The notes under the pieces are model-generated. The model did not search any database and was not told where the DNA came from. It worked only from the letters and a program-made list of their open reading frames with translations. Positions 818-39,635 of a stretch of 64,000 bases of DNA are shown here, in pieces. Position 1 is the first letter of the stretch. Each line of letters opens with the position of its first letter. The DNA comes from Eutreptiella sp. 'Long Island Sound 2002'. Its lineage: Eukaryota > Protista > Euglenida. The stretch lies in assembly GCA_964036045.1 (NCBI GenBank), contig OZ038378.1, positions 187,364,001 through 187,428,000 of the forward strand, written 5' to 3'. Position numbers and translations under genes: made by a program.

Positions 818-1134
818 GCCATGTCCTGAGCAACGTTGACTTGACCAGTGCCGATCTGACCCACGCGGACCTTTGCGGCGCCGATCTCAGCAACAGCGTC
901 CTCCGGGGCTGTGATCTGTCCGGGGCGCGGCTGCGCGGGGCGCGGCTCTGTGCCCTGGACCTGCGGCACCGCAGTCTGGCCGGCTTCGACCTGTGCGCCT
1001 GCGACCTGTCCGGCTCGGACCTGTCGAGTGCGGACCTCTCGGGGGCAAACCTCTCGGGCGCGGTCCTGACGGGCGTCAACATCACCGGCGCCTCCTTCAG
1101 CCGCGCGCTGTTGGTGGATGTGGATTTGCAGCGG
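818..1134 (+). CDS. Pentapeptide-repeat protein, first visible exon (gene is 5'-partial; exon starts in phase 1)
   Basis: Acceptor cgcacAG at 816-817 and donor CGG|GTgtgc at 1135. Translation is a regular 5-residue repeat (VDLTS ADLTH ADLCG ADLSN SVLRG CDLSG ... ALLVD VDLQR). No upstream exon or start codon was identified in the window. Confidence 0.9.
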
Positions 1135-1816
1135 GTGTGCCGGGGGTTGTGTGCAGCATGCACACGCGACGTCCGGGGGGCGGCTCTTGCGCGCGCCTGG
1201 TGCGCACGCGGTGCGCACGGCGACGGAGGATGTGCCATTCGGGCTGTCATTGTGGCTGCCGGCGCGCACGGGTTGCTCGGCGCTTCAACTTCACACCTTC
1301 GAGCGGTAACTCCGCGGCTTTAGATTCCCGGGCGGCCCCGTCTGACCATCCCCCTCTGGATGCGGCATGTGAAGCCCCCGTCTGCCGAGCGATGCGGGGG
1401 CGCTGCCGAGGTGAGGGGGGGAGGGGCGTGGTCTCTTGACCCTCCCCTAACGACGACCACCCTGGCGACCGTCCTTAGGCAGCGATGGTTCCCATCGTCG
1501 CCATAAGTAGGGAGGGACCACAGCCCAGTAGGGTGCAGGATTTGGAGGGGTTTTCCGGGTTCCACGTGTGCAGTAGTGGGCAGCGCAATTCCGCAGGGGG
1601 CACCACAGCGGCCGCGCCGCCCCACATGGGGCCTGGGATTTCTATTGCCGGGATCATCCGAAAAAGGTATTTGCAAGTTGAGTAGCGGGCAGCGATGATT
1701 TAGGGGGGTCAGCCCACATGGGGTTTCCAAATCTGGAAACCCCCGGCTTCTGGCAACAAACTTACAGTGTTTGTGTTGCTTCCCAGGACTGTGGGTCAGG
1801 CCGAGTCGAGGATAGT

Positions 1817-2016
1817 TGGCGGGTAGCCGGGTTCGAACTGAATACGAACGTTGCTGAAACGGAGATACCTGCTCCAGTGGTGGGTTGAGCGGCCCCTCCG
1901 GGCTCGAACACGCCACTTCTCAGGGCCTTCGCTGCGTGTCACTGGATGGGGATGGGAATCGAACCCGTGGCGAGACGCCTACGATGTTATGCCTCAGACC
2001 ACTGAGCTACGGGGAA
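1817..2016 (-). pseudogene. tRNA-derived element (tRNA pseudogene or SINE-like head) with three B-box-like motifs
   Basis: The minus strand reads CCCCG-TAGCTCAGTGG-TCTGAGG...ACGGGTTCGATTCCCAT (A box, B box, partial D and T stems). Two more T-loop-like motifs follow: TGTTCGAGCCC (1910-1900) and AGTTCGAACCCGGCTACCCGCCA (1839-1817). The acceptor and anticodon stems do not pair, so this is not an intact tRNA. Confidence 0.55.
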
Positions 2017-2258
2017 TACCCCTCGGCCGTTTAACCATCGGCCTTTGGCGGTCAATTGACGCTGTTCCGGCTTTTTTGTGGTTTGGGGTGCCCCTTTGCA
2101 TCCAAGGCCTCGATGCCTTGACACCTGCCGGCCCGCACGCAGTCGCACACAGGCCTGCACATCCCACCGCCTGTGCATCTGCCCAGATCTTGTCCATTGC
2201 CCTCGGAGCCATCCTGCGCTCAGGCGGCCGTCCTCTTTTTCTCTCTCACCCGTGATCA

Positions 2259-2642
2259 ATGGATGGCCTTTTCCTGGAAGAGTACAAGCGGGTCGCCCGC
2301 GACCTCGGCGCCACCGAGCGCGTGGACGTGATCCGCCTCGAGGGCTCGCCCCACCTCCAGCTCAACGGCAACTGCACGACGCGGTTCGCGGCGCACGTGC
2401 AGGACCTGGACGCCGTGGCCATCGTCCAGGCGCTGCAGGCCGCGAGCACCGGCGTGGAGACCATGGACTTCAGCTACAACTTCCTGGGGAACCGCGCGGC
2501 GACCACCCTCGCGGAGTTCATCCGCAAGGACAGTGCCCTCAACGCCCTCAACCTGGCGTTCAACGAGATCACGTCGGCGGGGGGGCGGGCGCTGGCGCAG
2601 GCCCTCGTGATCAACAAGAGCATCACCCATCTCAACCTGCAG
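2259..2642 (+). CDS. LRRC34: LRRC34-like RNI-type leucine-rich repeat protein, exon 1 of 3
   Basis: ATG at 2259, GC3-rich codons, LRR units (MDFSYNFLGNRAATTL, LNLAFNEITSAGGRALA). Donor CAG|GTgggc at 2643. Confidence 0.85.
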
Positions 2643-3920
2643 GTGGGCCCCTGCTACGGGGGGGGAGGGAGGGGGGGGTCTGTGGTGTGTGTGTGTGGGG
2701 CGGGGGATCGCACCAGAGATGCTGTTAGATCATTGTTCTGTCGGTTACGGGCGAAGGATGTATGGGTTCGCGGCGGAGGCTGTCCCTTATGAATGAGCCA
2801 CGTCTGTTTTCGTTTTCCACTGAGACCGGCCTGGGGTCTTGGGTGGCAGGATCGCGGTTAACCGACGGCGGATACCGACCACCTGGTGCACCGTTGTGGT
2901 CCAGGTGTCTGGAGTCTGGCAGACGTTTTTTTTTTGGTCACGGAGCACAGCCCTGGTTCGGCCCTCCCCCCCTCCTTCATGCCGTGATTGCTGCCGTATC
3001 GGGGTCCTGAGAACAGGGAGGCACGGAATGGCCATCGCCCCTACCGTCTTGCCAATCCCCTCGACAAAGCAATGCGCATCGATAGTGGCCTGAAACGTGC
3101 ATTGAATGGTCTATTCTTCAACCAGTGCCGAAAGGAACGTCCCCTGCCTCCCCAGGTGGCCCCGAGTGCCGACATGGTCGTTGCCCCCCCCCCCCCCCCC
3201 CGCGAGATGGTGACCCTCCGAACCCCGCAATCTTGGGACAGACTTTGTGTGGAGGATGCCGGCGCCGGCATGGGAGGGACGCCAAGGGGCAGAAGAAGAA
3301 GCAGCATTTTGTGAGCAGAGGGACAACTGTCCTCCTCTCACCTATTGAGAGTAATTTCCCCCGGCTGTTAGGGGTAACCAAGCAGGCTCTCCACCTCTCG
3401 CAGTTTTTTTTTTGTGAACCCTCTTCGCCCCCGATCCAACGGGTGGGCACCCAACCTCGCCCATCCACGCGTGGAGGATCCCCTCCTCAAAAGTCGAACA
3501 CGTACGTACACCCGGAAGTACCAACCGGCATACTCACTCAGCTTTGATGGCACAGACCCCGTCCCTTGCCCCCCCCCAGAGGCATCTGGTTGGGCGTGGG
3601 TTGTGAAGGGCTGTCGTACGTTGTCGGGAAGGTTGCTGGGTTGTCAGCGGCGAAGGCAAAGTTGGGCTGCACAGGACTCAGGACCGCGTTCCTCCGCCTC
3701 AGGCAGGCATGCATTAGAAGGGGGGGGGGGGTGGTAACCCACGCCCAGCCTACGCCCAGCCACTGTTCCCCTGATGCCAAGTGCCAGCTTCAATGGCATT
3801 TGCAACCGACAGTAACCGCCTCCAACCGCTTTCGCGGCCTCCTCCAACCGCCTGTCTCACCGCTTCTGCGGCCACCTCTGACGTCCCTTCCCTTCTCATG
3901 CATCTCTGCCTCCGCCTCAG

Positions 3921-4248
3921 GGCAATGATATCGGCGAGGAGGGCGGCATGGCGATCGCGGACATGCTCCCCGCCAACCCCACGCTGCGGACCCTCAACCT
4001 GTCGTCCTGCGGGATTAAGACGGGCACGATCATCGGCCTGGCCACAGCACTGCGGGAGCATCCGTCCCTCACGTCCCTGAACATCGACAAGCCGCTGCTG
4101 CCTGGCGTACAGGAGGGGCTCAGCGTCGCCACGCATCTGTCGGGGATGATCAAGGTGAACACGGCGCTGACGGAGCTGCACATGTCCAAATGGAAGATGA
4201 ATGACGACCAGTTGGAGCTGATGCTGCCGTCCCTGACCGCAAACAAGG
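3921..4248 (+). CDS. LRRC34: LRRC34-like protein, exon 2 of 3
   Basis: Acceptor cctcAG at 3919-3920. The join ITHLNLQ|GNDIGEEGGMAIA completes a canonical LRR. LNIDKPLL...E...HLSGMIKVN...LHMSK resembles the LRRC34 signature as I recall it. Phase-1 donor G|GTctgt at 4249. Confidence 0.9.
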
Positions 4249-4749
4249 GTCTGTCGTGTCGCTTTTGCGTGTCTGTGGTCTGCGTGGGCTTGCTCGGCGG
4301 TGGGCTGCGTCGTGTCGTCTCGTATCATCTCGCGTGGCGTGGTGCACTGTGTTTCGCTGTGTCATGTCCTGTTGTGCCTGCCAAAGGGTCCCTGTAGAGA
4401 ACTGCACGGGCACACAAGAGCGCGAACAATGGCACCTCGAAGAATGGCTACGGACCTCAGAATACCATGACATAATTGGGCACATTTTTGGTGTGCCACA
4501 TTTTGCCGTTCCAAATCGAGGTGGTCGCGCCTGTTCCCAATCCCCGCCCCCCCCGCAACGGTCCCACGGAAATAACAACCACCATTCGCAGTCATGCTTG
4601 TTGTGCCACGATCTGGGGATTTTGCCGCAAAAATTTCGGTGGTATTTAATACTTGACGTCAAACCTGCTCCGCTCCAACTTTTGCCATTGCAGACTCGGG
4701 CGTACCAAAATCAACCCCCCCCCCCCGGTATGTTGCGTCATGGCGTGTC

Positions 4750-5138
4750 GTCTTGTCTTGTCTTGTCTTGTCTTGTCTTGTCTTGTCTTGTCTTGTCTTG
4801 TCTTGTCTTGTCTTGTCTTGTCTTGTCTTGTCTTGTCTTGTCTTGTCTTGTCTTGTCTTGTCTTGTCTTGTCTTGTCTTGTCTTGTCTTGTCTTGTCTTG
4901 TCTTGTCTTGTCTTGTCTTGTCTTGTCTTGTCTTGTCTTGTCTTGTGGTTTGTCTTGTCTTGTCTTGTGGTTTGTCTTGTCTTGTCTTGTCTTGTGGTTT
5001 GTCTTGTCTTGTCTTGTGGTTTGTCTTGTCTTGTCTTGTCTTGTCTTGTCTTGTCTTGTCTTGTCTTGTCTTGTCTTGTCTTGTCTTGTCTTGTCTTGTC
5101 TTGTCTTGTCTTGTCTTGTCTTGTCTTGTCTTGTCTTG
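4750..5138. repeat. (GTCTT)n pentanucleotide microsatellite, ~390 bp, with GTGGTT variants, in LRRC34 intron 2
   Basis: Seen directly. It generates the spurious (VLSCL)n and (QDKTR)n ORFs. Confidence 0.98.
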
Positions 5139-5245
5139 CGGTTTGTCTTACGTCGTGCAACTGTGTCGTGCAGCGTTGTGGTGTGTTGTGTCCCGTCGAG
5201 TGGAGGTCCCTGTTGACGCTGCATCGCACTGGCACCCCGTCGCAG

Positions 5246-5658
5246 GCATCGTCTACCTCGACCTGAGCTGCAACAACCTCTCCAGCATCGGTGCCACGTT
5301 CGTCAGCACCGTGCTCTCCAAACGCGCCGACATCGTCCACCTGAACCTCAGCAGCAACAAAATGGGCGACGAAGGGGCCACGGCGCTGGCCCGCGTGCTC
5401 CGCAACCACCAGACGGTCCAATACCTGGACCTCACGTCGAACGGGATCGAGGGCCGGGGCCTTGTGGCGGTGGCGGAGATGATGGACCTGAACACGAGCA
5501 TCCTGCACCTGAAGCTCTGGGGCAACACCTTCTCCGAAGAGGCCTGCGCCAAGTTCCACGCGCTGAAGGGCCGCCTGGAGCGCCTGCTGACCGTCGATTT
5601 TGACATGTACACCGTCGATGAGAAGGCGCAAGTGCTTCTGAAGACCGACACGGAGTAG
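5246..5658 (+). CDS. LRRC34: LRRC34-like protein, exon 3 of 3 (spliced product 374 aa)
   Basis: Acceptor cgcAG at 5244-5245. The join NK-G|-IVYLDLSCNNLSSIGA is in frame. The C-terminus ILHLKLWGNTFSEEAC...VDFDMYTVDEK matches the LRRC34 C-terminal pattern as I recall it (not searched). Stop TAG at 5656-5658. Confidence 0.9.
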
Positions 5659-8099
5659 CGGGCGACAGCAGCCCCCCCCCCACACCCATTCCGCTCACCG
5701 TCTTCCTGACCCGTAACCCTTTGGCTGCTGCCATTTGCACGGGGAGGGCGGGTAAGCGACGCCATTACGGTTTGCCGCGTCTCCCCCCGGGGCCTGTGCC
5801 TGAGGCCCCCTTCCATGCTCCTGGGGAGATCGTCCAGTCCGCTGCAACACGCGCCCGGCCGCCCCCGTTTCGTAACCGCAGCACCCCCCCCTCCCCCCCC
5901 CCCACCCGCTTTGCCAACGGCCAGTGACCGTAATTGTATTCGGTCTCGAGACCCTCCTCCAGCCCCTCTGCGTTTGAAGCGCCGGGCTTGCCCCTCCTTT
6001 GGTCAATGCCCCTTCCTTTTCTGCCGCCGCGCGACGCGCCTCCGCATGCGCCTCCGTTTTACACTCAGGGCTCGGCGGGGGGAGGGGCAGCGAGTCCTGG
6101 AATGTGGGGACCGCAGTCCCGGGCGGGGCATCCGGGGTCTCTGTGGCACGGGGCGCACGTGTGCTGCACGGCACCGTGAGGCGACCGCCAGTGGCAAAGG
6201 CTCTCTGCAGCCATCGCGTGCAGACCTTTGCTGGAGGTGGGCCCCACTGGAGTAGGGGTGCGGCGCCACTGGCATGCGGCGGGCGCACAGTCGGCTGTCG
6301 GCGCCGGAAGGAATGACTGGCCTGTTAACCATCCGGAACATGCCCATCACCTGTGGTTTGGGTGCCAAGGGTCCCTCTGCACACGGTTCACAGTACACAG
6401 TACAGTCCACGTACAAACTTGTCTTTCACACATGCGGCAATGGGCCATTCACCGTTTTGCGTGGGCAGCCGAGGTGCTTGATGCCCCGGTTGTGTTCATC
6501 CGCCAGGCGTTGGCATCCCAACGAGGAGGTGTTGCTGGGCCCAAATCCAGCTGCTGACTTCCCGGGGTTGAACTGCAGGGCCATTGTTGCGAGGCACGTG
6601 CCGCTACCCTTACCCTACCTCGAGCCAGGACCCCCCCCCCCCCCCACTGAGGCGCCCCCCCATCCCGGCAGCTCGGAAGCCCTCCTGAATCTGCCTTCAT
6701 ACCGCACCCCCCACCCCACCCACCGCCCCTGAGGCCTCAAGTAGTGGGGGTCTGGGGGGTTGGGGTATGGACCTGCGGAGAGGAGGAGACCACACGGGGG
6801 CATCCTGGGGTTGAGGCGCGAGGCACGGCTCTTGCGGTCATGCTGGGCAGACTCCATGCGGCCATCCTTGGGTTTAGCCATGGGGCCGGGGGGCGGCCCG
6901 TGCGGTGCTGGTTTAGGAGCGATCGGTGCAATACTTCTGCCTACGATTCAATGGCCTGTGGTACATATTCTGAGACGGACGGGACCCCACAGCCTAACGA
7001 AAAGACCAAAGGGGAAGAGGGTGTCCCTGTGTCCGGGTGTGAGGGCAAAGGGGGGGGGTCCTTTTCGTTTGCTTTCCGGCGGCCGGACCGGTGGTGAGCC
7101 AAAGTAGACCAAGGCGTTGGTTGGCCGTACATGCCGCCCCGGGGGTGGGGCGCATCATTTGGCTGGTGCACGAAACAAAATTGCCCGTGGAGGCGTGTCG
7201 GACCATGCCCGCTGGTCGCGTTGCCCGCGGTTTGGTTGCTTTCCTCACACGCCCCCTGCGGAGGTCGTTTGGTGGGCTCTGGTGTGTGTGGTGGTACTTC
7301 TTTGACCCCAAGTTGTTGGTGCGATGTTGTTTGCTGAAGTTGTTCCGTCCCTTTTTCTAGCATTATCATCCCTGTTGTCGTGCCAGTGCCCGGGGCTGGG
7401 GCTACAGGTACCCACCCTTGTACACCACAAGGTCTCGTGAACAAATGGACAAACCACGCCAAGAACGCACATGATGCGCAGTGCTGGATGCAGGTCGGAT
7501 CCAACTCGAGGCCGGGCTCCATTGACGCTGGCGTGTACAGGAATGGCAATGCTTACTGTTCGTGCCAAGAAGCATCTGGAGGTTTAAGTGGCTGCTGCGG
7601 AGTTTGCGGTTGACGGTGGCTGGCGGTTAAGCGCGGTTGACCAACAGCAGCTGCGATTACCTCCCACCAGTTGGTGGTCGGCCGGTGCCCTCCTGTGACC
7701 TGGATGTACCGCAGTCCAGTGTTTCCGTCAAGGGTAGCGCTGTGCGTAGGCAGGGGCCCGGAACCGGAGTGAAATTTGTGATCCTTAATCCCGTTTGATG
7801 TTGTCAGTTGTGCCATGATTTTTAATAGTTTCTTTTTTAATTTATGCAATCACTGCCGAAGGTATTCGGATGGGCTGTGTGTGTCACCATGTGGGTGTGC
7901 ACGGTATTGGCAATCTGCCCAGTCCCCCTTATGGTGCCCCCATGCCACTGCATGTTGTATGTCTGGAGCCATGCAAAGGCCCCTCATTTTTGCGGTAGGA
8001 TATCGGCGCAGGATGGGCCTGAAGAGCGGTCTGTCGGGGGTGGCGTCGGCGTAGAGTATCGTTTGCACTGTCTGAGCTTGTATGGTCATGTACTATGCA

Positions 8100-9640
8100 C
8101 TCGGAGGTTGAGATATGGAGGTCACTGACTGGCGGAAGACTTGTGCCCCATTTGTTGATGTGTTGTTGTTGTCAGTGATGTGCCATGTTGCCTGTCGAAT
8201 GAAGGGCATCCCGTCGCAGCTTGCAGCGAGTACTGCCCAGCACTCTGTACCCTTTGCCCCATTGCCCCTCTGTACCCACTGCTTCACGCTGGGATGGGCT
8301 TGAGGGGGAGAGAGGCTTGAGGGTTGTTTCCAGCGCACCGGCCAAACCGGTTCCTGGAAAAGTGGTTCTCGGACTACAGCAGTACTGTAGCAGTTACGAA
8401 GCGGGTGGAGGGCTGTCGGAGGGACACACCCCACCCTTCCTTCCAAACACATCCCTGGCTCCAGAGCCCTCCGTACCCTCCATGTCCCTGTGTACCAATG
8501 GCCTGCACCCACCTCATCTGGGTGCCCACCAATACACGGCCCTTTGCTTGGACAAAGGGTTTGGCAAGATGCACGGGGGGGGGGGGGGGGCAAGCGGGGC
8601 AGATGCGGCTCCTAGGCGTCTTGCATCCCCACTTGGGACCCCAAAACTCCGCCATGTTCATGTTGGTGTAGCCCATGGCCTGTCCGTATGCCATTCCACG
8701 AACGAAACCTGTTTTGATTGGCGCGGTTTCATGGCAATTGGAGTGGTAAAATTTAGGGTGGAGAACTGTGGATGCGCATACTTGTTGCGGCTCACCCTTG
8801 ACAGCATGACCAGTATTGCCACCTGCCCGTTGAATGAAGAGGTGCAAGCCCGCATCCATATCTGAGGGGGTCTAAGTTCACATCCTTCATGGTGGAAAGT
8901 AGGACTTCCACCTAGCAAGGGCCATGGTGGATGAGTGGCGGAGCTCAGCAAACATTTGTGATAGCCTATGTCTCTCCCGCACCACCACCCAGGGTCTGGA
9001 AGTACTGGGCACCTGTGTAGGAACGTTGGTGGTGTGGGCACTCACATGTGAAGTGTTGTATCAAGGATTTTGTGGCAGCCTGCATTGCCAAGTTGGAGGT
9101 CTTGTAGGGTTTCAGTCGCTCAAAACAATTTTTCCATTTTGTTGGGATGGCAGTAGACTATGAGGATCCACAGCCCGTCTACCCCTCAACAAGTGAAACT
9201 CAACAATTGATGACCACAGAGGGGTGACAACTGTAGAATGTACATCCAATCAACTTTGTAAACATAGCCCTTGGAAGCAAAAAGGGTTGTGCTGAACAAC
9301 GAGCCCATACAGGAAACCATTGGGCAAACACAAGTATACCCAGACATTACAACTAGTGCATCAATAGTGGTGAACATGTTAACATCTCCCTTTTTTCACC
9401 AATTTGGCAAGCCTGGCAAACCTCTCTAGCGGCTTGGTAAATTGTTGAGGCGTTGAGGTAGGTTTTCTGCCCAATATGCGGGCATTCCATTGTTCAACCT
9501 CCTCATCACTTTGACCACAAGGGAATGCAGTGCACGCAGTGCAAACTTTTGTATGTCGGCAACTACTTGAACCCTAGTTTTTGCTTTTTTTTCACTAGTT
9601 GGTTTTTTCCATAACAGATTTTTTTTACGCTTCTTGTGCA
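8100..9640 (-). mobile_element. Probable decayed 3' fragment of an RNase H-bearing non-LTR retrotransposon
   Basis: Broken minus-strand frames carry eroded motifs: KFALRALH (zf-RVT-region-like), GNTGHAVKG and TNMNMAEFWG (GNPG.AG.G / TNN.AE RNase H-like), WHITDNNN. Boundaries are approximate and there is no intact ORF. Confidence 0.35.
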
Positions 9641-10556
9641 TTCATTTGAATTGCCATCCATTTTCACCCATTTTCAGCCATTTTAGCCCATTTTTACCCA
9701 GTTTTGTTGCACGTTCTTTGTTGTAGGTGGATGCTGGATTATGATGATGGGGAATCCCAGGTTTAAAACCTTAAACCAGAGTTTAGGCCACCCGCGTCTC
9801 CTCCCTCATTAGTGCTTTAGTTTTGGTGGCGGTGTGGTGGGAGCGGCGTGCCTAGGCCTACCCGAGAATGCCAGTGCATTGAGACAGAAGCCCGAATTGT
9901 GCATGCGAATAGGGAGGGAGGGAGGGTAGTGGTGCGGGCAGGGCATGACAGTGAAGGCGGGGCTGGGTGCAGAGAGCGAGGGGGGGGGGGGGGGGGAGCA
10001 GACACGGTACACCCTAAACACCAGATGTCGTCTACATTCACAATGCCACAAATCGGCAGGTGGGTTGTTACACACTCCAAAGCGGATTCCAACCTTCATG
10101 GTCATTGCCTTGCTATCTCTAGGACACAATGAACTTGCCCTTGAATGATCCGCAGTCCCGGATCATTGTGAATCAGTAGCATGGCTTATCAGTAACGGAC
10201 CACATAGGGGATGCCATGCACGTAGTGCGAAGTTTTGGATTCAAGCGCCGTTCGGATATCAACGTTCACCAACAAGGTAAGGCACTCAAGGATAACTCAC
10301 AACCCACATTCCTTCATTGCATTTGTGCATTTGCCTTGTGTCTTGGGGCTAAAGGGTCTTCAAGGAATCTCCACCCCCTAGACAGGTGACAGGTATTCTT
10401 GGGTCTTCATGTCCTTGGTGCTTGATGGCCGTGGCCAAGCGCAATCTACTGTTGCTGTTGCATGAGTGTGTTGGAAGATGGTGGTGGCCTTCTGGGGACA
10501 TAGGCATTCTGCCTTGACCCCATTGGGGCCAAACTTGTAGCAATATGCAGCACTAT

Positions 10557-10696
10557 GGCCAAGTTCTTGCACTGTGTGCGCACTGCGTGCGCACTGCGCA
10601 CGCAGAGGCTGGGATACTCACTCCCTGGCTAGGTTTCATTGTGTCGGCACTACACACAGTGCCCACGCAGTGCGCACACAGTGCACCAACTTGGCC
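10557..10696. repeat. 140-bp hairpin / miniature inverted-repeat element
   Basis: 38-bp arms GGCCAAGTTCTTGCACTGTGTGCGCACTGCGTGCGCAC (10557-10594) and reverse complement at 10659-10696, with 3 mismatches. No TSD seen. Confidence 0.75.
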
Positions 10697-13523
10697 CCAA
10701 GGTGATAAGGGGTGTAGTGGCTGAACAGGAATTTTACTCCAACACCAGATTCTCAGTCACAGACAAGCATAATACGTAGGTTGATCATACATGTACATGT
10801 TTGTGAAGAATGGCCTTGTACTTGGTGCTGAAGACATTCACTGTGGCGTCAAACAGTACTGGCACGAAACCATTGATCAAGATCAAACCTGCTCCCCTGG
10901 TCTTGGCCACCTATGTTTCCACCCTTCTACGAAAGAAGTTGAAGGAGTGGGAGGTGGCTTGGCTACATCGGGCTGGGGACATATGCCTCCCATGCCACAT
11001 GCCCCCACATGACTGCAAAACTGTACTATGTCCATGCAAGTAAATTGGGGCAGTAGGACGAAAGGACACACCGCACGCACACAGTATGCACACATTCACA
11101 TCCCCCCCACCACAATGCACTTTTTTGTGACAGTTGTTGCATTTTTTTTTGCAACTTCAATTTGCATTCAGTTCTGATTTGGAAAACAGGAAATCAATGC
11201 ACACCATGCACGGTACACACAATGCGCCCCCTTGCGGGTGGCTACACCAACCACCCCCAACCTTGTGCAATAGCCCATACAAGCGCCAATGTACTTTTGA
11301 CAGCAAAAATCCTTGTAAAATTGCCTGCACCATTGTTGGCTAGCAAGCAAAACTGCCTTTAAAATGCAGGTGTCATTGTTGGCCAACAAGTAAAAAAGGC
11401 TGGTGAAATAGCACGCACCGCTATGCGCGATTTTTTTTTTTGGCCATTGAATCACAAGTGAAAGTTTCCAAGGGGGTCACGCATCTTGCATGCAAATGGT
11501 TATGGAATGGTGGTATACATTTTGCCAAAACTGTACAACACACCCCTAAGGAATTTGGTCATTCCCAGTCAGTCGTTCCCAGACTGTGAATATTGCGGGG
11601 CTCTCCTAGTTGTAAGGGAGGATCATACTTGTATTCCCGGTATGGCACCTGTACCTTGTGCTTTCACCATGGCATCCTCAGAGGAGGGGATGGTGGGTGA
11701 CGGAAGCAGCAGGTCACTACGGAAAGAATGACGCCCCCCCCCCCCCCCCGCCCGCCAAAGGTGTCTCGCAACCCACGCAGCGACGCCTAGCGATTTGTAC
11801 AAGCTAGAATTTCTGCATTTCAAATTCTGTACGAAATTTTTGCACGCAATTTGTTCAGTGTTTTTCAGGATTTGTGCAGGGATACTTTAGGCATTGCCTT
11901 TGCGACTTGATGACCATGCCAGATGATTTGGTTAATGATAATTGGTTTCCCATGGAAGTTGCAGAAGTGCTGAAGCACAAAACGTTGGTCCACCAGGAAA
12001 TACCAGGGACTATGGACAGGACAGCAACCATCCAGAGTCAACCAGGAAATACCAAGGACTATCTTGAAACAAACTCTACTAGGAAAAACAGCAAGTGTCC
12101 ACTGTTTCTCATTAGCAATTTTTGGGAACCATACATAATTTGTTCGCTCACTTTTAAGAAATGGCACAGATTTTGTCGCGCCAAAATTTGTAGATTCATA
12201 TTTTTCATTGCACGGAATTTACCCCCCCCCCCCCGGTACCTTTGTAATCCCCCCCTGCCCTTCATTCCCCATCCCACACTTCTAGTCCCCCAGCCTCCTC
12301 GCTCGGGGAACGGTTGCTGAGTCGTAATACGCCCACCCCCCACAGGGTTGCCCCCTATCAGCGTCTCTATTTGGGGACATGCCTGGCATGCATGAAGCTA
12401 TTGGCTTTGCAACTCTTGCTGTACATAGTATCTGGGCCATGATGCCCACGCACACCATTGGCCTGACGCCCTGAACTGTCTCCGCTGTCAGAAAAAATAA
12501 ACTGCCACCCCCCACAATGGTAAGTTCTCCATACACAAAAATTGGGAAAATGAGGCGGGCACAAGACTTTGAGCCCACCGGTTGCGACATAGTGGGAAAT
12601 GAAAATGCAGAAATAGGCAATTGTAGAATGCTGAAAGCCGTAACGTCCCTACAATTCATTGTCACACACCATATTTTAGTGTACACATTGTGAGAAGAGT
12701 TTGTTGGCAGCCTCAGAGTTACAGGACCCCTTGATGTGATAAGGTCTCAATATCCATACGTGTGCTTGGATCATGGGGCATATTGATCCATGGCACACAA
12801 TTTGCACCAAATGGGCATGCATCAATGCACTGCATTTGGCCCTCATATATCATTTCTATGTCCACTGCCTACTATCAACCCAGACTGCAATGCCTTGGCT
12901 TGTACAACAGCTCTATTATCAGACTGCCTCTTGCCCAAAATGCAAGGCACAAAGTCTACGACTTTCTCTGGTAACCATGAGCCATATATGTCCAAAATGC
13001 TGCCTGCAACCATCTGCAAACGATTTTGGAACCTGTTAGTGAATGCAATGTCCCATCCCCGGCCCAAAACACTTTCGCCTTTATTTCGGTCTTTTCAGCA
13101 GCCATTCCTCTTGCTTCAATTGTTGTATTTTCAGCTGCATATTTCGCCCTGTGCATGGTTTGTTCTGGTGTCAGGTGGTTTTGGTGTTGGTCCCAGTAAA
13201 GTCACTCCAATAACAGGCGCTGTGCGCAGACTTTGTGCAAATGCAACTGTCAGGGTTTGGGGCAACCTCTCGTACAATGCTGTGCTAAAACTGCTCTGTT
13301 TAAATCGATAAAGGTGGACCAGAATTGCCTGCGAGCGGGAGCATCAGAATGTTCTGGCATTTCCTTCAGTTGCACCGCAGACAGCATTGCAAAAATGGGG
13401 AGGCTTCCAATGGGTGTTGAGCACGCACAACTGCATTGCATTGTATGGGTGCTTCAGCCTGTTCCATCCCTTACCCCACCCGTCTCTTCCCTCAGCCCTG
13501 TGTCACCGCCACTGTCTCTGCAG

Positions 13524-13685
13524 CGGGACCTCAAGGACGCCGATCTACTGCATGCAGATCTCTCTGGGGCCAATTTGGCGAGCACCAACTTGTCTGGGGC
13601 ATTGCTTGCGGGAGCCAAACTGCGCAATGCGAATTTGTCAAGCGCCCGTCTGCACAGAACCAATTTGGTGGGCAGTGACCTGCAG
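13524..13685 (+). CDS. Pentapeptide-repeat protein, second visible exon
   Basis: Acceptor ctgcAG at 13522-13523. RDLKD ADLLH ADLSG ANLAS ... SDLQ. The join VDLQR|RDLKD preserves the 5-residue register. Donor CAG|GTgtgc at 13686. Confidence 0.9.
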
Positions 13686-13765
13686 GTGTGCTGTGCCCGT
13701 TTGTCAAGCCCAGGCCATTGCATGGTCGGAAGAGCATGGTCGGAAGACCCGGGGGGGGGGGAGGG

Positions 13766-13809
13766 GGGGAGGGAGGGAGGGAGGGAGGGAGGGAGGGAGG
13801 GAGGGAGGG
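13766..13809. repeat. (GGGA)n tetranucleotide microsatellite
   Basis: Seen directly. Confidence 0.9.
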
Positions 13810-15169: not shown

Positions 15170-15365
15170 GGGGCCAATTTTACGAAGGCAGACTTGGAGG
15201 AGCTTGACTTCACGCATTTCTGCCTTCGGCGAGTCAACTTCACCGATGCGAACTTAACAAAAGCCAAACTGTACCATGCAGACCTTCAAGGGGCCTGCCT
15301 GGCAGGTGCACGACTGAAGGATGTGGAACTCCAAGGCAGGGACCTCAGCCAGTATGACCTGACAG
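15170..15365 (+). CDS. Pentapeptide-repeat protein, third visible exon
   Basis: Acceptor ccttAG at 15168-15169. SDLQ|G ANFTK ADLEE ... YDLT keeps register. Phase-1 donor G|GTacc at 15366. Confidence 0.9.
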
Positions 15366-18705: not shown

Positions 18706-18938
18706 GGTGCGACCTCACGGGCGCCAATTTATACTGCACCAGCCTCTGCGGCGCCACGCTACGCAACAGCTGCTTGAGGCAGGCCAACCTCCGCGACGCA
18801 GACCTGACCGACACGGACTTAATGGACGCAGACCTCTCTGACGCGGTGCTGACCAATGCCAATTTGTACGGCGGCGACCTGTCCGGAGCTCAGCTTTGTG
18901 GGGCAAATCTTTTGGACACCGACCTGACGGCGGTGAAG
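18706..18938 (+). CDS. Pentapeptide-repeat protein, fourth visible exon
   Basis: Acceptor cacAG at 18704-18705, phase 1. YDLTG CDLTG ANLYC ... TDLTA VK. Donor AAG|GTgtgc at 18939. Confidence 0.9.
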
Positions 18939-19152: not shown

Positions 19153-19248
19153 GTGACCGCCAATCAACTGTCCACTGCCCAGATCCCACGCGCTCTGCGT
19201 TTGGTCTCGAAGGCCTGGTCCGTCCGTGACGCTGTCCTTCGGCGCTGA
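19153..19248 (+). CDS. Pentapeptide-repeat protein, probable last exon
   Basis: Acceptor ttgcAG at 19151-19152, phase 0. VTANQLSTAQIPRALRLVSKAWSVRDAVLRR then TGA at 19246-19248. The repeat pattern is weaker here. Confidence 0.65.
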   Translation: MTANQLSTAQIPRALRLVSKAWSVRDAVLRR

Positions 19249-23907: not shown

Positions 23908-24499
23908 TGGATGCAGTGCGACGGAAAGTTGTTGGTTTCTTTACCCTGTTTACCCTACCTCAAACAGAAACACAGCGAGTGGTTTATTGCCCCACTCACC
24001 TGGTGGTCTGCAACCCAATTGTCATATGTCACACTGCTCATCAGCACCTCCAAATTTGATTGTGCTGTGAAGTGCTTTGTTGTTTTACGCTGGATACTCT
24101 GGCTGGGATTTCAGGAGACTTTTCAGGGCTCTGTGTTTTTGCCGCAAACAAAAAACTCTGGACGAGGCAACTCATGATATGGGTGACGGTCCTGGGACCC
24201 ATGTCATCAAGACGCACTGTCCACTCAGGCAGTTGGCCAGCAGTATATGTGCATGATATACTCCTGCCCCTCCCAAATTTCTGATGGTACTGTGCAAAGG
24301 CAAGGCAGACCATCTGCTTTGATTGCCAAGACAATACACTACAGTGTGGCCAAGTCGGTCAGGAGCATACAATGTGGGTGATGTTGCGGAGGGTCCGTGG
24401 TTGCCCACTTTTACATGCTGCTGACTAGAAACATGCGCCATTTTGTACCCCCTCGCTGCAGCTTGGCCGCTGCCACCGCAACCTGTCCGAATCATCTGG

Positions 24500-24509
24500 T
24501 TTTTGTCAG
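24500..24509 (+). promoter_or_regulatory. Candidate 3' splice acceptor (trans-splice or 5'-UTR intron) 11 nt upstream of the ATG
   Basis: TTTTGTCAG|GCAAATCTCTG-ATG. The same 11-nt AG-to-ATG spacing occurs in the paralogue. Confidence 0.5.
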
Positions 24510-24520
24510 GCAAATCTCTG

Positions 24521-27361
24521 ATGTTCGACCCCGCCACATGGGAGGACGGGGGTGCGCTGCTGTCCGCAAGAACCCCAAGGCTGTACACCACCGGGGACGT
24601 GAGCCCGGAGGGCATGGGTCGAAGGTGGTGGGTGCTGCTCACCACTGCCGCGGTGGCATTCGCCTCCGGTCTGGTTTGCACTCTCTTTGTCCTTGTCGCT
24701 GCACCGGAATACTACGCACATGCCTCAACGGAGCTCCACATCAGGCCACCCTCGCAGGCGTTCCCACGGCCGCCGGCTGCTGCTCGTGCTCCAAGAGCGC
24801 CGCGCGTGCCCCTGTGGGCTGCACAACATCCCGCTGGGTCTGCAAAGCCGGCAGCGTCCCCCATGCAGCCTACAAAAACGGCAGATGCCGAGGAGGCGCT
24901 GCAAGCCGCAAGTGCAGCCCTTGAGAAAGCCCTCGACAAGGCGGAAGTGATTCTGAGGTATATTCTGAGCGATGACGCCAAGGACATGGACTTGCAGAAG
25001 GCCCAGAAGGCTGCGCAGATAATCGGGGATCTGGTGGATAAGCGCAGGAAGGCAGCCAAAGGGGCGGCGGACCCTGCGAAGGCCCTCGCGCTTGTGGAGC
25101 ACGCGGAGAGAGAGCAGGCTCTCGTGAACGCCGTCGTGGCCGCAATGCTCTCGAAGCAGGACGCCGAGAACGCCCGTCCGCCCTCCAAGCGCAACGAGCA
25201 GCCCCCGTCCCGGGGCTCCATGCCTCGTGTTGAGGGCGCTGCCCAGCCCTTGCCATCGGTGGCCGCCAGCTCCGCGCCCCGCAACGCACGCGCGACCCCG
25301 GCCAAGCCGCCCGCGCCGAAGGAGGACCCAGACGATCCGCAGGAGGCGCTCAATGCCGCCGTTGCGACCCTCCACAAGGCCCTGGAGCGGGCCGAAGTGA
25401 TCCTCATGTACTTCCTGAAGGAGGAGGCCCGGGACATGACGCTGGAGAAGGCGGAGAAGGTGCTGGAGGCGGTCGGCGCCCTTGTGGCCACCCGCCGGGC
25501 GGCCGCCAGAACGGCGGCCGACCCCGCGCCAGCCCTGGCGCTCGTGGAGCACGCGGAGAAGGAGCAGGTCGTTGTGCGCGACCTCGTGTCGGCCTTGGTC
25601 CGGAAGCAGGAGGCCGAGACGGCCCTGGCCGCTGCGGGCCGCGCCGCGCAGGGCCCGCCCGCCGGGTCCGGGCCCGCGCCGGCGGGTGTGCCGTCGACGC
25701 AGCTGGACGACCCGCACGAGGCACTGAAGGCGGCGGACGCGGCCCTGGACGGGGCCCTGGACAAGGCCGAGGTGGTGCTCGTGTGGGTGCTGGGGCCCGA
25801 CGCCGAGGACATGAGCCTGGCGAAGGCCCAGAAGGCGCTGACCGCCATCGACAATCTGCTGGAGAAGCGCTGGGAAGTGGCCGAGGCGGCGGCGGACCCC
25901 GTCCAACCTCTCGCCCTCGTGGAGCAGGCGCAGAAGAAGCAGCTGCTGCTGCGCAACGTCGTGGCCGCGATGCTGCTGAGGGAGGACGCGGCGCGGGCCC
26001 TGGGTCGCCCCGTGCGCCGGGCCGCGCGGGTGCCCCCCCCGGGGGCCGAGGCCGCGCCCCGGCCCGCCACGAACCTGGAGGACCCCCGGGAGGCGCTCGA
26101 GGCCGCGGATGCGGCCCTGCAGAGGGCCCTGGGCAAGGCTGAGGTGGTGCTGACGTGGGTGCTGGGGCCGGACGCCCGCGACATGAGCCTGGCGAAGGCG
26201 CGGAGGGTCCTGCACGTGATCGACGATTTGGTCACGAAGCGCAAGGAGGCGGTCCAGGTGGCGGCAGACCCGGTCCAGGCCCGTGCCCTCGTGAAGAAGG
26301 CGGAGAAGAAGCAGCTGGTGGTGAGCAACGTCGTGTCCGCGATGCTGCTGAAGCAGGAGGCCGAGCAGGCCCTTGGGGCCTCTGGTGCTGCACAGCCATC
26401 GCCGCCTGCGACACCAGTTACCGCCGCCCCCCGGCCGGCGTCGACGCCTGCACCGAGGGACTCCCTCCACACCGACCTGGCTGACCCCGAGGAGGCACTC
26501 CAAGCGGCGAACGTGGCCCTGGACAAAGCCCTGGACAAAGCGCAGGCGACCCTCATGTTCCTTCTCGGCCGCGACGCCCAGGACATGAGCATCGAGAAGG
26601 CGGAGAGGGCCCTGAAGCTGATGGCCGACAAGGTGCAGCAGCGCAAGGAGGCCGCCAAAGCGGCGCCAGACCCTGTTCAAGCGCTGGCACTAGTGGAGAA
26701 GGAGGAGAAGCAGCAGCAGCTTGTGCAGAAGGTCGTGTCAGCGATGGTGTTGCGGAAGGATTCTGAGCAGGCTCTTGGTGTCTCCGCCGTGGCCGTGCCA
26801 TCGTCGGCAGCCAAGTCGGCAAAGGGTTTGTCCCCCACTAACCTGGACGACCCTGAGGAGGCACTGACCGCCGCGTCCGCGGCCCTTGACCAAGCCCTTG
26901 ACAAGGCAGACGTGATTCTGAATTGGGTGCTCGGCGCTGAGGCGCGGGGCATGACCCTTGAGAAGGCGCGGACGGCCTTGGCAGAGATGGAGAACTTGGT
27001 GGGCCGGCGCAAGCGCGCGGCCCAGTACGCGGCAGACCCTGCGCTGGCTCTTGCGCTGGTGGAGAAGGCAGAGCAGAAGCAGCTTCTCGTGGAGAACGTC
27101 GTTGCGGCAATGGTTTTGAAGGAGGACGCGGGGCGCGCCCTGGGTCGCTCGAAGGGGACCGCACGGCCATCGTTGTCTGCCGGGTCCGAGGCGGCGCCTC
27201 CATCTGCCGCGAAGGCAGCGCTGTCTTCGACGGAATCATCGCCTGCGCTGGGGCCAGACCAGTCGTCCAGCGAATCACCCACGCCGCAGTGGCTGCTGGT
27301 GCTGGTGAATATAGCTCTGCTCGGCCTACTTGTGTGTCTGTGCGTGTCGTGCCTGCAGTAA
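24521..27361 (+). CDS. Intronless 946-aa protein: N-terminal hydrophobic segment, six ~96-aa helical repeats, C-terminal TM segment; function unknown
   Basis: Long open frame with strong GC3 bias. Six DDP.EAL.AA.AALDKALDKAEV.L...DM.L.KA...DP..ALALVE.AE.KQ.LV.NVV.AM units. Start placed at MFDP (24521) by alignment with the paralogue N-terminus. Ends QWLLVLVNIALLGLLVCLCVSCLQ-TAA. Confidence 0.9.
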   Translation: MFDPATWEDGGALLSARTPRLYTTGDVSPEGMGRRWWVLLTTAAVAFASGLVCTLFVLVAAPEYYAHASTELHIRPPSQAFPRPPAAARAPRAPRVPLWAAQHPAGSAKPAASPMQPTKTADAEEALQAASAALEKALDKAEVILRYILSDDAKDMDLQKAQKAAQIIGDLVDKRRKAAKGAADPAKALALVEHAEREQALVNAVVAAMLSKQDAENARPPSKRNEQPPSRGSMPRVEGAAQPLPSVAASSAPRNARATPAKPPAPKEDPDDPQEALNAAVATLHKALERAEVILMYFLKEEARDMTLEKAEKVLEAVGALVATRRAAARTAADPAPALALVEHAEKEQVVVRDLVSALVRKQEAETALAAAGRAAQGPPAGSGPAPAGVPSTQLDDPHEALKAADAALDGALDKAEVVLVWVLGPDAEDMSLAKAQKALTAIDNLLEKRWEVAEAAADPVQPLALVEQAQKKQLLLRNVVAAMLLREDAARALGRPVRRAARVPPPGAEAAPRPATNLEDPREALEAADAALQRALGKAEVVLTWVLGPDARDMSLAKARRVLHVIDDLVTKRKEAVQVAADPVQARALVKKAEKKQLVVSNVVSAMLLKQEAEQALGASGAAQPSPPATPVTAAPRPASTPAPRDSLHTDLADPEEALQAANVALDKALDKAQATLMFLLGRDAQDMSIEKAERALKLMADKVQQRKEAAKAAPDPVQALALVEKEEKQQQLVQKVVSAMVLRKDSEQALGVSAVAVPSSAAKSAKGLSPTNLDDPEEALTAASAALDQALDKADVILNWVLGAEARGMTLEKARTALAEMENLVGRRKRAAQYAADPALALALVEKAEQKQLLVENVVAAMVLKEDAGRALGRSKGTARPSLSAGSEAAPPSAAKAALSSTESSPALGPDQSSSESPTPQWLLVLVNIALLGLLVCLCVSCLQ

Positions 27362-38303: not shown

Positions 38304-39635
38304 ATGTCTGAAATTGCGAATATCAACAGGGCTGTTGCTATGCTTACGGAGAATTTGCGAGCGGTGGGGAAAATCTCATTGGTGCTGCTTGAAGGGGTCT
38401 GTGACAATCCAGATGTGTTCTTGAACAGAGCTCTGACTGTCAAGGAGAGCGTGACAGTCAATCCAGCGATGCTACAGCTGGCGGACAGGCCTCTGATTAC
38501 CAAGAAACAGCAGTATTCAGTATGGGTAATTCATACCACAACCGCGAGCAGGCTGACGCGTGCCTAGCCTAAATTCCGGCAAATTCGCATGTTTGCCCCG
38601 GGGGATGAGCCCAATGTTATAGTCTTCAAGGTGCCAAAGGAGGAAGAGAAGATGATGGTACTTCAGTACCATGTACAGTGGGAGCAGGAACTTTTCGACA
38701 GTCTGTCTATTCAGAAAACGGAGGCGGTGCTGGTTCCGGGGGCAGATCCGGGACAGTCCAGATACTTATTTTGCCAATTGTCTTTAGACCATGCGCACGA
38801 GCTTGTGCGACTGTATGGCAATAGAGCGCGGTTTGGCATCATGCCGCTGAAATGGTATCAGGGGGACGCGGTGGACGATCTTCCAAGAAGGTTTGAAGTT
38901 TACGTCAGCGCAGAGGTACGTGAGAAACACGCACCGTTTATGTTTGCCTATGTGCTGTCGCTGTTTTGGGAGCTCCGGCCCAATGGGCTCTTGGCAGCAC
39001 AATCGGGTGTGGCTATTCAAGTGGTCGGGTACAATAAAGTTCGACTGGGACTGTCTAACGCTGCGCACAACGTGCTGGTGGAACAGTTGGACAAGTGCTC
39101 CTCGCAGTATGGCCTTAAATTCAAAGATGAGGGTTCAGGGGAGTTTGTTGGCCAGGGTGACACGTACATACAGCCGCCAGCTGAGTGGGGACCGGCAGAT
39201 AACTTGTTCCTGATCAATGTGCCGCCGTGGTGGGGGGAAAAGGCGATCGTGGCAATCATGCAAACCTCTGAAGTGGAGAAACTTATTGTGCGACGCATGA
39301 GATGGTCGGTGGGTGAGATACGCACCCTCACGTGGAAAGTGTGTGTGCCGCAGGCAAAAACGCCCAAAATACTGGGATCTGTGTTTCGAGGATCCGAAGG
39401 AGACTTCCTGATGCAGGTCATTTCTCAACCTGAGTATGCCATGCGTAGGGAGCGAGGCAATCCTAAAGGTGGAGGCAAAGGAAGAGGCAAAGGGGGAGCC
39501 GGCTCCAGTAGTGCGTCTGTGTCCTCGTCGCGTAGCTACAGTTCAGTGGCATCGTCTGGTGCCTCCACGTCAGTGGCGTCGTCGGCTGCCATGGAGTGTG
39601 ATGTGGATATGAAGTTCAACAAGCGAAAGCGATGA
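38304..39635 (+). pseudogene. Retrotransposon ORF1 (~443 codons) interrupted by one in-frame TAG at 38565-38567
   Basis: Track ORFs 38034..38567 and 38589..39635 share a frame and are separated only by TAG plus 7 sense codons. The C-terminus is basic, G-rich (RGNPKGGGKGRGKGG) and S-rich. The start at ATG 38304 is an estimate. Confidence 0.7.

Follow-up and report, generated by a model that had tools for sequence, protein, structure and literature searches.

Probable nesting of an LRRC34 gene on the same strand within an intron of a KCTD9-like pentapeptide-repeat gene in a spliced-leader trans-splicing euglenid

In Drosophila, 71% of nested genes lie on the strand opposite to their host, and 72.5% of the same-strand guests in flies are single-exon genes (PMC3814207). 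In the Euglenozoa, which have been reviewed (PMC8061765), the genes of Diplonema papillatum stand in unidirectional arrays (PMC10161547). Here we describe a locus of the euglenid Eutreptiella sp. at which a complete LRRC34 orthologue of three exons lies on the same strand as, and wholly between two consecutive exons of, a large pentapeptide-repeat gene. Positions refer to the window, the whole stretch of 64,000 nucleotides that was analysed.

The host is predicted from gene structure to be one KCTD9-like gene of ~64.6 kb. Its single BTB_2 (KCTD-type) start exon lies ~45.3 kb upstream of the window (PF02214, E 3.8e-10). An AG precedes its ATG by 8 nt and an in-frame stop precedes it by 18 nt. 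Downstream, sharing its strand and with compatible phases, come at least 22 pentapeptide-repeat exons, and the host has only one stop codon. The predicted combination of BTB_2 and pentapeptide repeats in one polypeptide fits the order of animal KCTD9, which likewise carries an N-terminal BTB_2 followed by pentapeptide repeats. Animal KCTD9 has ~389 aa and a KHA domain; a Pfam scan of the host start exon returned no match to KHA, and the host, at ~2000 aa and at least 23 exons, differs from KCTD9 about five-fold in size. Within the window the host comprises:

818-1134, + strand: host exon A, pentapeptide repeats (Pfam Pentapeptide, E 2e-29; codon score +0.78 per codon)
1135-13523, + strand: GT-AG host intron of 12,389 nt in phase 0, within which the guest lies
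13524-13685, + strand: host exon B, pentapeptide repeats (Pfam Pentapeptide, E 3.8e-17), phase 0 at both ends
15170-15365, + strand: host exon C, ending in phase 1 at CAG/GTACCG
18706-18938, + strand: host exon D, ending AAG/GTGTGC
19153-19248, + strand: host exon E, the last coding exon, with its TGA stop at 19246-19248

Exon A is internal: its first 2 bases complete a codon, its end is in phase 0, and it is bounded by the acceptor cacag/ and the donor CGG/GTGTGC (slashes mark exon borders). Exon B is preceded by a pyrimidine tract and tgcag/ and closes with the donor CAG/GTGTGC. The original prediction that these two exons join by GT-AG in phase 0 and in repeat register is supported by the consensus sites and by a spliced distance of 15 nt from the final repeat centre of A to the opening one of B, so that both phase and register are kept. 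Register agreement is weaker evidence than that prediction took it to be. With respect to the repeat, the resolved host introns fall at just three positions, so a random host acceptor would fit donor A by chance at ~3/13 (0.23) and not at 1/15. Besides the junction of A and B, 12 host junctions fit in splice site, phase and register, including the one across a second guest-bearing intron described below, for which the chance level of phase and register agreement is ~0.54; six host junctions were left unresolved by a simple rule of GT-AG plus register.

Between exons A and B, at 2259-5658, lies the guest:

2222-2223, + strand: candidate spliced-leader acceptor AG, the nearest AG upstream of the guest ATG, giving a 35-nt 5' UTR
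2259-2642, + strand: guest exon 1, from the ATG to CAG/GTGGGC, phase 0 (codon score 1.21)
3921-4248, + strand: guest exon 2, acceptor cctcag/, donor G/GTCTGT, ending in phase 1 (Pfam LRR_6)
4750-5138, unstranded: (GTCTT)76 microsatellite in guest intron 2 (TRF score 678)
5246-5658, + strand: guest exon 3, ending at the TAG stop 5656-5658

The full three-exon, same-strand gene that had been proposed here thus stands, with an ATG, two GT-AG introns (the first in phase 0, the second in phase 1; exon limits refined in this work) and a TAG stop. Its suggested likeness to LRRC34 can be put more firmly. In tblastn searches against a 476-aa bird LRRC34, the three guest pieces were colinear with residues 80-437 (exon 1 with 80-198, exon 2 with 200-308 and exon 3 with 310-437), including the non-repeat C-terminal tail, at 31-41% identity; the first ~80 bird residues have no counterpart in the guest. 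The eight best protein matches of exon 3 were all LRRC34 (40-41% identity, E ~1e-31). LRR_6 was found on all three exons; the match of exon 1 is weak (E 0.004) and does not reach the curated cut-off. The reading frame is shut two codons before the ATG by an in-frame TGA (2253-2255), and exons 1 and 3 are each single copy in a search of the organism's own genome. On these features the guest, of 374 aa, is predicted to be an intact, independently translatable gene.

The phases at the exon ends would also permit other joins. Exon A ends and guest exon 2 begins in phase 0, as guest exon 1 ends and exon B begins, so both pairs join in frame, and the leucine-rich exons could in principle serve as alternative host 3' exons in a BTB-pentapeptide-LRR fusion, or guest exon 1 could be spliced to exon B. 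We consider such cross-splicing very unlikely. The guest has its own ATG behind the stop just mentioned, it aligns colinearly with complete LRRC34 proteins, it is the sole LRRC34 copy, and none of the LRRC34 matches listed carries the pentapeptide family in its precomputed Pfam domains. Joining exon A to the guest 5' acceptor (2223) would lead to a stop ~34 codons on, as read by eye.

The host holds a second such arrangement. Upstream of the window, another long host intron, of 12.2 kb, encloses an intronless ankyrin gene of 612 aa on the same strand. The two guest-bearing introns are each more than three times longer than any other resolved host intron, and each contains one complete same-strand gene; by codon usage, only the guest exons score as coding within either. 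Both guests begin 0.7-1.1 kb past the host donor and are followed by a spacer of 8-10 kb.

The remainder of the intron at 1135-13523 contains no other pentapeptide-coding or strongly coding-like segment, and ten long ORFs inside it gave no Pfam match. A tRNA-looking stretch near 1900-2000 was recognized by neither ARAGORN nor Rfam, and a promoter and terminator scan was empty, its bacterial models being not applicable to a euglenid locus. What the intron does hold is repetitive DNA:

1495-1768, unstranded: dispersed ~270-bp repeat between the host donor and the guest, copies at 76-88% identity (of 40 scored matches, 39 are at other genomic sites, a count that is a lower bound)
9511-10699, unstranded: dispersed-repeat cluster towards the 3' end of the host intron, with copies at 78-97% identity at many places in the genome
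11795-12243, unstranded: dispersed ~445-bp repeat, copies at 75-91% identity on many contigs

Dispersed repeats of this kind invite the suspicion that the LRRC34 block was misplaced between exons A and B during assembly. We regard such an artefact as extremely improbable: the contig is 201 Mb long and has no N in the 344 kb examined, exon A, exon B and the guest all occur in one copy (exons A and B showing otherwise only generic repeat similarity in the genome), and the ankyrin gene is a second, independent case in the same host.

A more serious alternative removes the nesting altogether. Three tandem pentapeptide-repeat genes could run from the BTB exon to the last exon before the ankyrin gene (E13), from the first exon after it (E14) to exon A, and from exon B to exon E, with the ankyrin and LRRC34 genes as ordinary neighbours and the mRNAs resolved by SL trans-splicing and polyadenylation. 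Every gene here is on one strand, 1-10 kb is a usual spacer length in the block, and the matching of register and phase is weak evidence for nesting. Ahead of exon B the in-frame ORF extends back to 13200 and includes ATGs at 13395 and 13410; an in-frame ORF is likewise open ahead of E14. Against this, an in-frame ATG is absent from both exon B and exon C; a scan through exons B-D passes six out-of-frame ATGs before an in-frame one appears, in exon D, and out-of-frame ATGs come first in exon B and also in E14, where there are two. Codon usage points the same way. Exons A-D score between +0.17 and +0.78 log-odds per codon, and the intron reference windows have a mean of -0.75 (sd 0.28); the upstream in-frame extensions score like introns, at -0.54 to -0.62 for exon B and -0.68 for E14. 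In large part these extensions are pyrimidine tract belonging to a consensus acceptor that sits exactly at the onset of the repeat periodicity, and consensus donors close exons A and E13 exactly where the periodicity ends. Read-through after E13 scores -0.61 per codon; that after exon A, at -0.12, is ambiguous and not clearly non-coding, which favours the tandem genes. The BTB start and the stop-bearing last exon exist once each. No usable start follows either guest, the ORF extensions are intron-like, and the locus is better explained by a single spliced host than by three tandem genes, a reading that we judge unlikely. Splice sites, ATG content, codon usage and the single start and stop together support the predicted complete same-strand gene inside a host intron, and we find it highly probable that the layout represents a real host and nested gene pair.

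Searches made exon by exon looked for traces of the transcripts. A word-index protein search with exon A and its surrounding ORF and with guest exon 3 found no near-identical transcript-derived protein: exon A recovered bacterial and metagenomic pentapeptide proteins only (at most 54% identity), and guest exon 3 recovered LRRC34 homologues, none from the euglenid's lineage. Two scans of metagenome contigs, among which close records may be lacking, gave no match to the 3' end of exon A or to the guest exon 1-2 junction, and a search of the organism's own genome for a fused A-B paralogue or retrocopy, or for an SL-tagged guest copy, returned just the locus itself and generic repeat similarity.

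The genomic surroundings bear on the orientation of the guest. Allowing at most 1 mismatch, we found 3537 matches in the genome to the published 28-nt Eutreptiella spliced leader (Eut-SL), and a reversed control gave 0; SL relics were absent from the 144 kb formed by the 80-kb upstream flank and the window. Between -57 kb and +92 kb every gene is on the + strand, as is a Gypsy element further out (-80 to -75 kb); all genes from 112 to 157 kb are on the - strand and all from 224 to 254 kb again on the + strand. In this small sample of 15 genes over 344 kb, strand switches occur at 2 of the 14 adjacencies (binomial P ~0.0065). Given strand-coherent blocks and ~3500 SL copies, same-strand nesting is the expected orientation. 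The original prediction had treated it as unusual, a premise that comes from animals and is sound for Drosophila; the SL copies and strand blocks make it not transferable to this locus. It is moderately likely that the guest simply follows the strand of its block, as in other Euglenozoa, and is no exception.

We propose the following for the RNA level. The host mRNA would form by cis-splicing of the donor at 1135 to the acceptor at 13523, passing over the guest's three acceptors, two donors and 3'-end site. The guest mRNA is, by analogy with the genus, most likely SL trans-spliced at the AG at 2222-2223 and polyadenylated downstream of 5658; we infer the use of this acceptor from its position, and 5' UTRs of Eutreptiella average 21+/-25 nt (PMC3621762). 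Putative release of the guest mRNA by SL trans-splicing from the host precursor or from a polycistronic precursor is plausible. That host and guest share one long precursor is somewhat doubtful; if they do, any given precursor molecule would give rise to only one of the two mRNAs. As a whole, a nested pair with an SL-capped guest whose strand follows its block is in our view quite probably the best explanation of the locus.

A further, tentative reading extends this to both guests. Intron-enclosed genes may be promoterless, with host and guests as alternative products of one precursor whose expression is coupled and mutually exclusive per molecule. SL trans-splicing and polyadenylation of the guest would then compete with cis-splicing of the 12-kb host intron, the BTB-pentapeptide gene would be coupled to both the ankyrin and the LRRC34 guest, and the placement of each guest shortly past the donor, ahead of a long spacer, would be a kinetic arrangement. 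The lengths of the spacers on the two sides of the guests (0.7-1.1 kb and 8-10 kb) are also ordinary for intergenic DNA of the block.

Like the same-strand nested genes of flies, the LRRC34 gene is a complete protein-coding gene wholly within an intron, and splicing of the host has to bypass the splice sites and the 3'-end signal of the guest. It differs from them in that the guest has two introns and one host has two same-strand guests, and in that the organism uses SL trans-splicing and has strand-coherent blocks, for which reason the selective logic against same-strand nesting may not apply. With the arrays of Euglenozoa, described in Diplonema papillatum and in review (PMC10161547; PMC8061765), the locus shares co-oriented neighbours, spacers of more than 10 kb, transposable elements in introns and, as presumed here, the SL on mRNAs. 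The genes described there lie side by side, whereas here the cis-spliced introns of one unit enclose others; with one unit split around others, cis-splicing must span a presumed trans-splice acceptor. In euglenids, cis-splicing is abundant, SL trans-splicing is near-universal and transcription is probably polycistronic. A locus at which a cis-spliced intron must span a presumably trans-spliced gene, and where this happens twice within a single host, offers a natural test bed for how splicing selects a cis donor or the spliced leader and whether nested genes need promoters of their own. The animal rule that nested genes are mostly antisense is unsuitable as a yardstick of oddity in Euglenozoa. 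A guest gene inside a same-strand host intron is a known kind of arrangement, and beyond these points on splicing choice and the strand rule the one described here is ordinary.

Exons A and B of the host, a gene predicted to encode a BTB domain and pentapeptide repeats, flank an LRRC34-like guest gene and in the correct frame encode nothing but pentapeptide repeats. A ends and B begins in phase 0, and after splicing the last repeat centre of A lies 15 nt from the first of B. These positions and the splice sites bear out the original prediction of a GT-AG join in phase 0 with the five-residue register intact. Junction reading and colinearity with LRRC34 likewise uphold the complete same-strand, ATG-to-stop, three-exon gene placed between them.

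Host exons, guest genes and guest-bearing introns (coordinates of zero or below count back from the window start; slashes mark exon boundaries)
818-1134 (+): host exon A; acceptor cacag/, donor CGG/GTGTGC; Pfam PF00805, E 2e-29
13524-13685 (+): host exon B; long pyrimidine tract and tgcag/, donor CAG/GTGTGC; PF00805, E 3.8e-17
15170-15365 (+): host exon C; frame and register continued
18706-18938 (+): host exon D; frame and register continued
19153-19248 (+): host exon E; frame and register continued, ends in TGA
1135..13523 (+): host intron with LRRC34 guest, 12,389 nt
2259-2642 (+): guest exon 1; donor CAG/GTGGGC, phase 0; matches bird LRRC34 residues 80-198
3921-4248 (+): guest exon 2; donor G/GTCTGT, phase 1; matches residues 200-308
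5246-5658 (+): guest exon 3; TAG stop; matches residues 310-437
-22696..-10462 (+): host intron with ankyrin guest, 12,235 nt
-22008..-20170 (+): ankyrin guest; intronless 612-aa ankyrin-repeat ORF; Ank_2, E 1.7e-102

The host is far larger than could be seen within the window. In the 80 kb examined beyond the window start, + strand pentapeptide exons reach upstream to about -44.4 kb, and a first exon with its ATG at -45339 encodes a BTB_2 (KCTD/T1-type) domain (PF02214, E 3.8e-10). A TAG in frame 18 nt and an AG 8 nt 5' of this ATG fit the expectation for a trans-spliced first exon with a short UTR. Because the BTB_2 start exon precedes the pentapeptide exons, the predicted architecture is KCTD9-like, BTB then pentapeptide repeats, over a span of about 64.6 kb. 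Thirteen host junctions combine an xAG/GT consensus donor with a pyrimidine-rich cag/ acceptor and set the repeat centres a multiple of 15 nt apart. Six are unsettled by this rule, so the exon count (at least 23) and length (roughly 2000 aa) are estimates. Settled introns measure 0.16-3.95 kb, except for the two that carry guests. A (GGGA)15 run (13751-13809) lies shortly after exon B.

Aligned piece by piece, the three guest exons are colinear with the 476-aa bird LRRC34, and the best 8 database matches to the third piece are all LRRC34 (40-41% identity, E about 1e-31). The predicted product is 374 aa, a TGA lies in frame two codons 5' of the ATG, and the guest occurs once in the genome by search. 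The closest upstream AG, at 2222-2223, implies a 5' UTR of 35 nt; Eutreptiella 5' UTRs are reported as 21+/-25 nt (PMC3621762). A (GTCTT)76 microsatellite (4750-5138) largely fills guest intron 2. In the stretch separating the host donor from the guest, 1900-2010 (-) resembles a tRNA 3' half by eye; neither ARAGORN nor Rfam recognises it.

The two guest-bearing introns share a layout, in which the guest begins 0.7-1.1 kb 3' of the host donor and 8-10 kb of non-coding DNA follows (for the ankyrin guest, a start <1.1 kb past the donor and a spacer of ~10 kb). Screening of the LRRC34-bearing intron identified dispersed repeats in the non-coding DNA after the guest.

Since all local genes lie on one strand, the real question is whether there is one host or three tandem genes, running from BTB to E13, from E14 to A and from B to E, where E13 and E14 are the host exons flanking the ankyrin guest. 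We consider a single spliced host with a nested guest the likely arrangement and three tandem genes an unlikely one. The register match proves weaker evidence for joining A to B than first assumed, because the 13 settled introns fall into just three classes by their position in the repeat (7/8, 6/9 and 9/6 nt around its centre codon, Leu/Phe). For a host acceptor drawn at random, the chance of fitting donor A is about 3/13, and about 7/13 applies to the ankyrin-bearing intron. Those 13 introns, from -44024 to 18705, mostly interrupt a CAG/G-type site; the three classes could reflect proto-splice-site bias or introns duplicated together with the repeats.

Translation starts argue against three genes. 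Exons B and C lack an in-frame ATG, and the first, at 18822 in exon D, follows six out-of-frame ATGs and leaves ~70 codons; E14 has two out-of-frame ATGs ahead of its first in-frame one. With out-of-frame ATGs first, neither B-D nor E14 would give a pentapeptide protein as spliced leader (SL)-capped 5' exons. Three genes would be accommodated if these exons extended 5', as the frame is open upstream of B as far as 13200, a stretch that has ATGs at 13395 and 13410, and also upstream of E14; long open stretches 5' of acceptors are common in the host gene. By a per-codon log-odds score trained on confident exons, exons A-D score +0.17 to +0.78, the extension upstream of B -0.54 to -0.62, that upstream of E14 -0.68 and read-through beyond E13 -0.61. 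Intron windows taken at random average -0.75 (sd 0.28). Read-through past exon A, a GC-rich stretch, is ambiguous at -0.12. There is a single BTB start and a single stop-bearing last exon, coding-potential scoring of both long introns identified no coding-like segment besides the guests, and Pfam gave no hit to any of ten long ORFs within introns. Chimeric use of host and guest exons would be permitted by frame, whether exon A were joined to guest exon 2 or guest exon 1 to exon B; we regard this, or mis-assembly, as very improbable.

The published 28-nt Eutreptiella SL (PMC3621762) has 3537 genome matches with <=1 mismatch, against 0 for its reversed control, and the organism is therefore a euglenid of Eutreptiella type that uses SL trans-splicing. 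The approximately 3500 copies are spread over contigs, some in regular arrays (e.g. ~17.3 and ~27.9 kb spacing on one contig); the contig studied here, on which the window covers bases 187,364,001-187,428,000, is 201 Mb of a 2.28 Gb assembly. No SL relic occurs in the 144 kb comprising the window and 80 kb upstream, and searching the genome revealed no retrocopies of either the host or the guest. Sequence searches were done per exon: word-index searches with exon A and guest exon 3 returned no near-identical protein, and metagenome contigs gave no exact match to the exon A 3' end or the guest exon 1-2 junction.

At the RNA level, we infer that host mRNA would arise when 1134 is cis-spliced to 13524, passing over the guest's 3'-end site as well as its three acceptors and two donors, and that guest mRNA would carry an SL cap at 2224 and be polyadenylated past 5658. 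Were the precursor shared, trans-splicing at 2223 would sever it, making host and guest mRNA alternative products. A start site of the guest's own between 1135 and 2223 would instead make it an ordinary nested gene. Nothing in the locus requires a new mechanism, and it offers a good natural test of the choice between cis- and trans-splicing.

Other features lie nearby. A six-repeat three-helix protein (24443-27361, +) is followed 18 kb downstream by an 810-aa ORF (45213-47645, +) without a Pfam match, whose similarly worded helical repeats make it look like a paralogue. A LINE-type retrotransposon (38589-44117, +) carries one ORF for an Exo_endo_phos endonuclease and another for RT, zf-RVT and RNase H. 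An isolated eukaryotic SSU rRNA fragment (52864-53173, -; Rfam RF01960, 54.7 bits, model positions 619-1113) lies a short distance 5' of the adenylate/guanylate cyclase gene at 54173-56611 (+). At the upstream edge, -79999..-75083 (+) is a long open Ty3/Gypsy-type polyprotein ORF, classed by eye from its protease, RT, RNase H, integrase and chromodomain wording.

Across 344 kb, taking in the window with 80 kb before it and 200 kb after it, coding-potential scores with loci named by Pfam reveal strand-coherent blocks. From about -57 kb to +92 kb (about 150 kb) genes are + only: an ankyrin gene, the host, its two guests, two three-helix-repeat genes, adenylate cyclase, an unnamed locus, a BT1 transporter and a methyltransferase. 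The ~45 kb at 112-157 kb are - only (amidohydrolase, a TOD1/MUCI70-like gene, unnamed loci) and the ~30 kb at 224-254 kb + only (BART, MFS and ART genes). Excluding guests, strand switches at 2 of 14 adjacencies (binomial P about 0.0065, in a small sample where some unnamed loci may be exons of one gene).

The finding is real, its anatomy, homologies, copy number, SL genes and strand blocks being directly observed, and the nested-gene structural reading is probably right. Same-strand nested genes are already known; here they occur in a trans-splicing euglenid, doubled within one giant host, and a limited literature search found no publications tying Euglena to nested genes. The view that same-strand nesting is unusual holds for Drosophila, where 71% of nested genes run antisense to their hosts and 72.5% of the same-strand guests lack introns (PMC3814207), making a same-strand guest with introns a minority but known case. 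It does not carry over to this locus, whose strand-coherent blocks favour shared orientation. These blocks resemble the unidirectional arrays of kinetoplastids and match those of Diplonema, which have spacers >10 kb and are taken as polycistronic units (PMC10161547; PMC8061765). By analogy, because neighbouring genes form such arrays, a gene dwelling in an intron would be expected to share its host's orientation.
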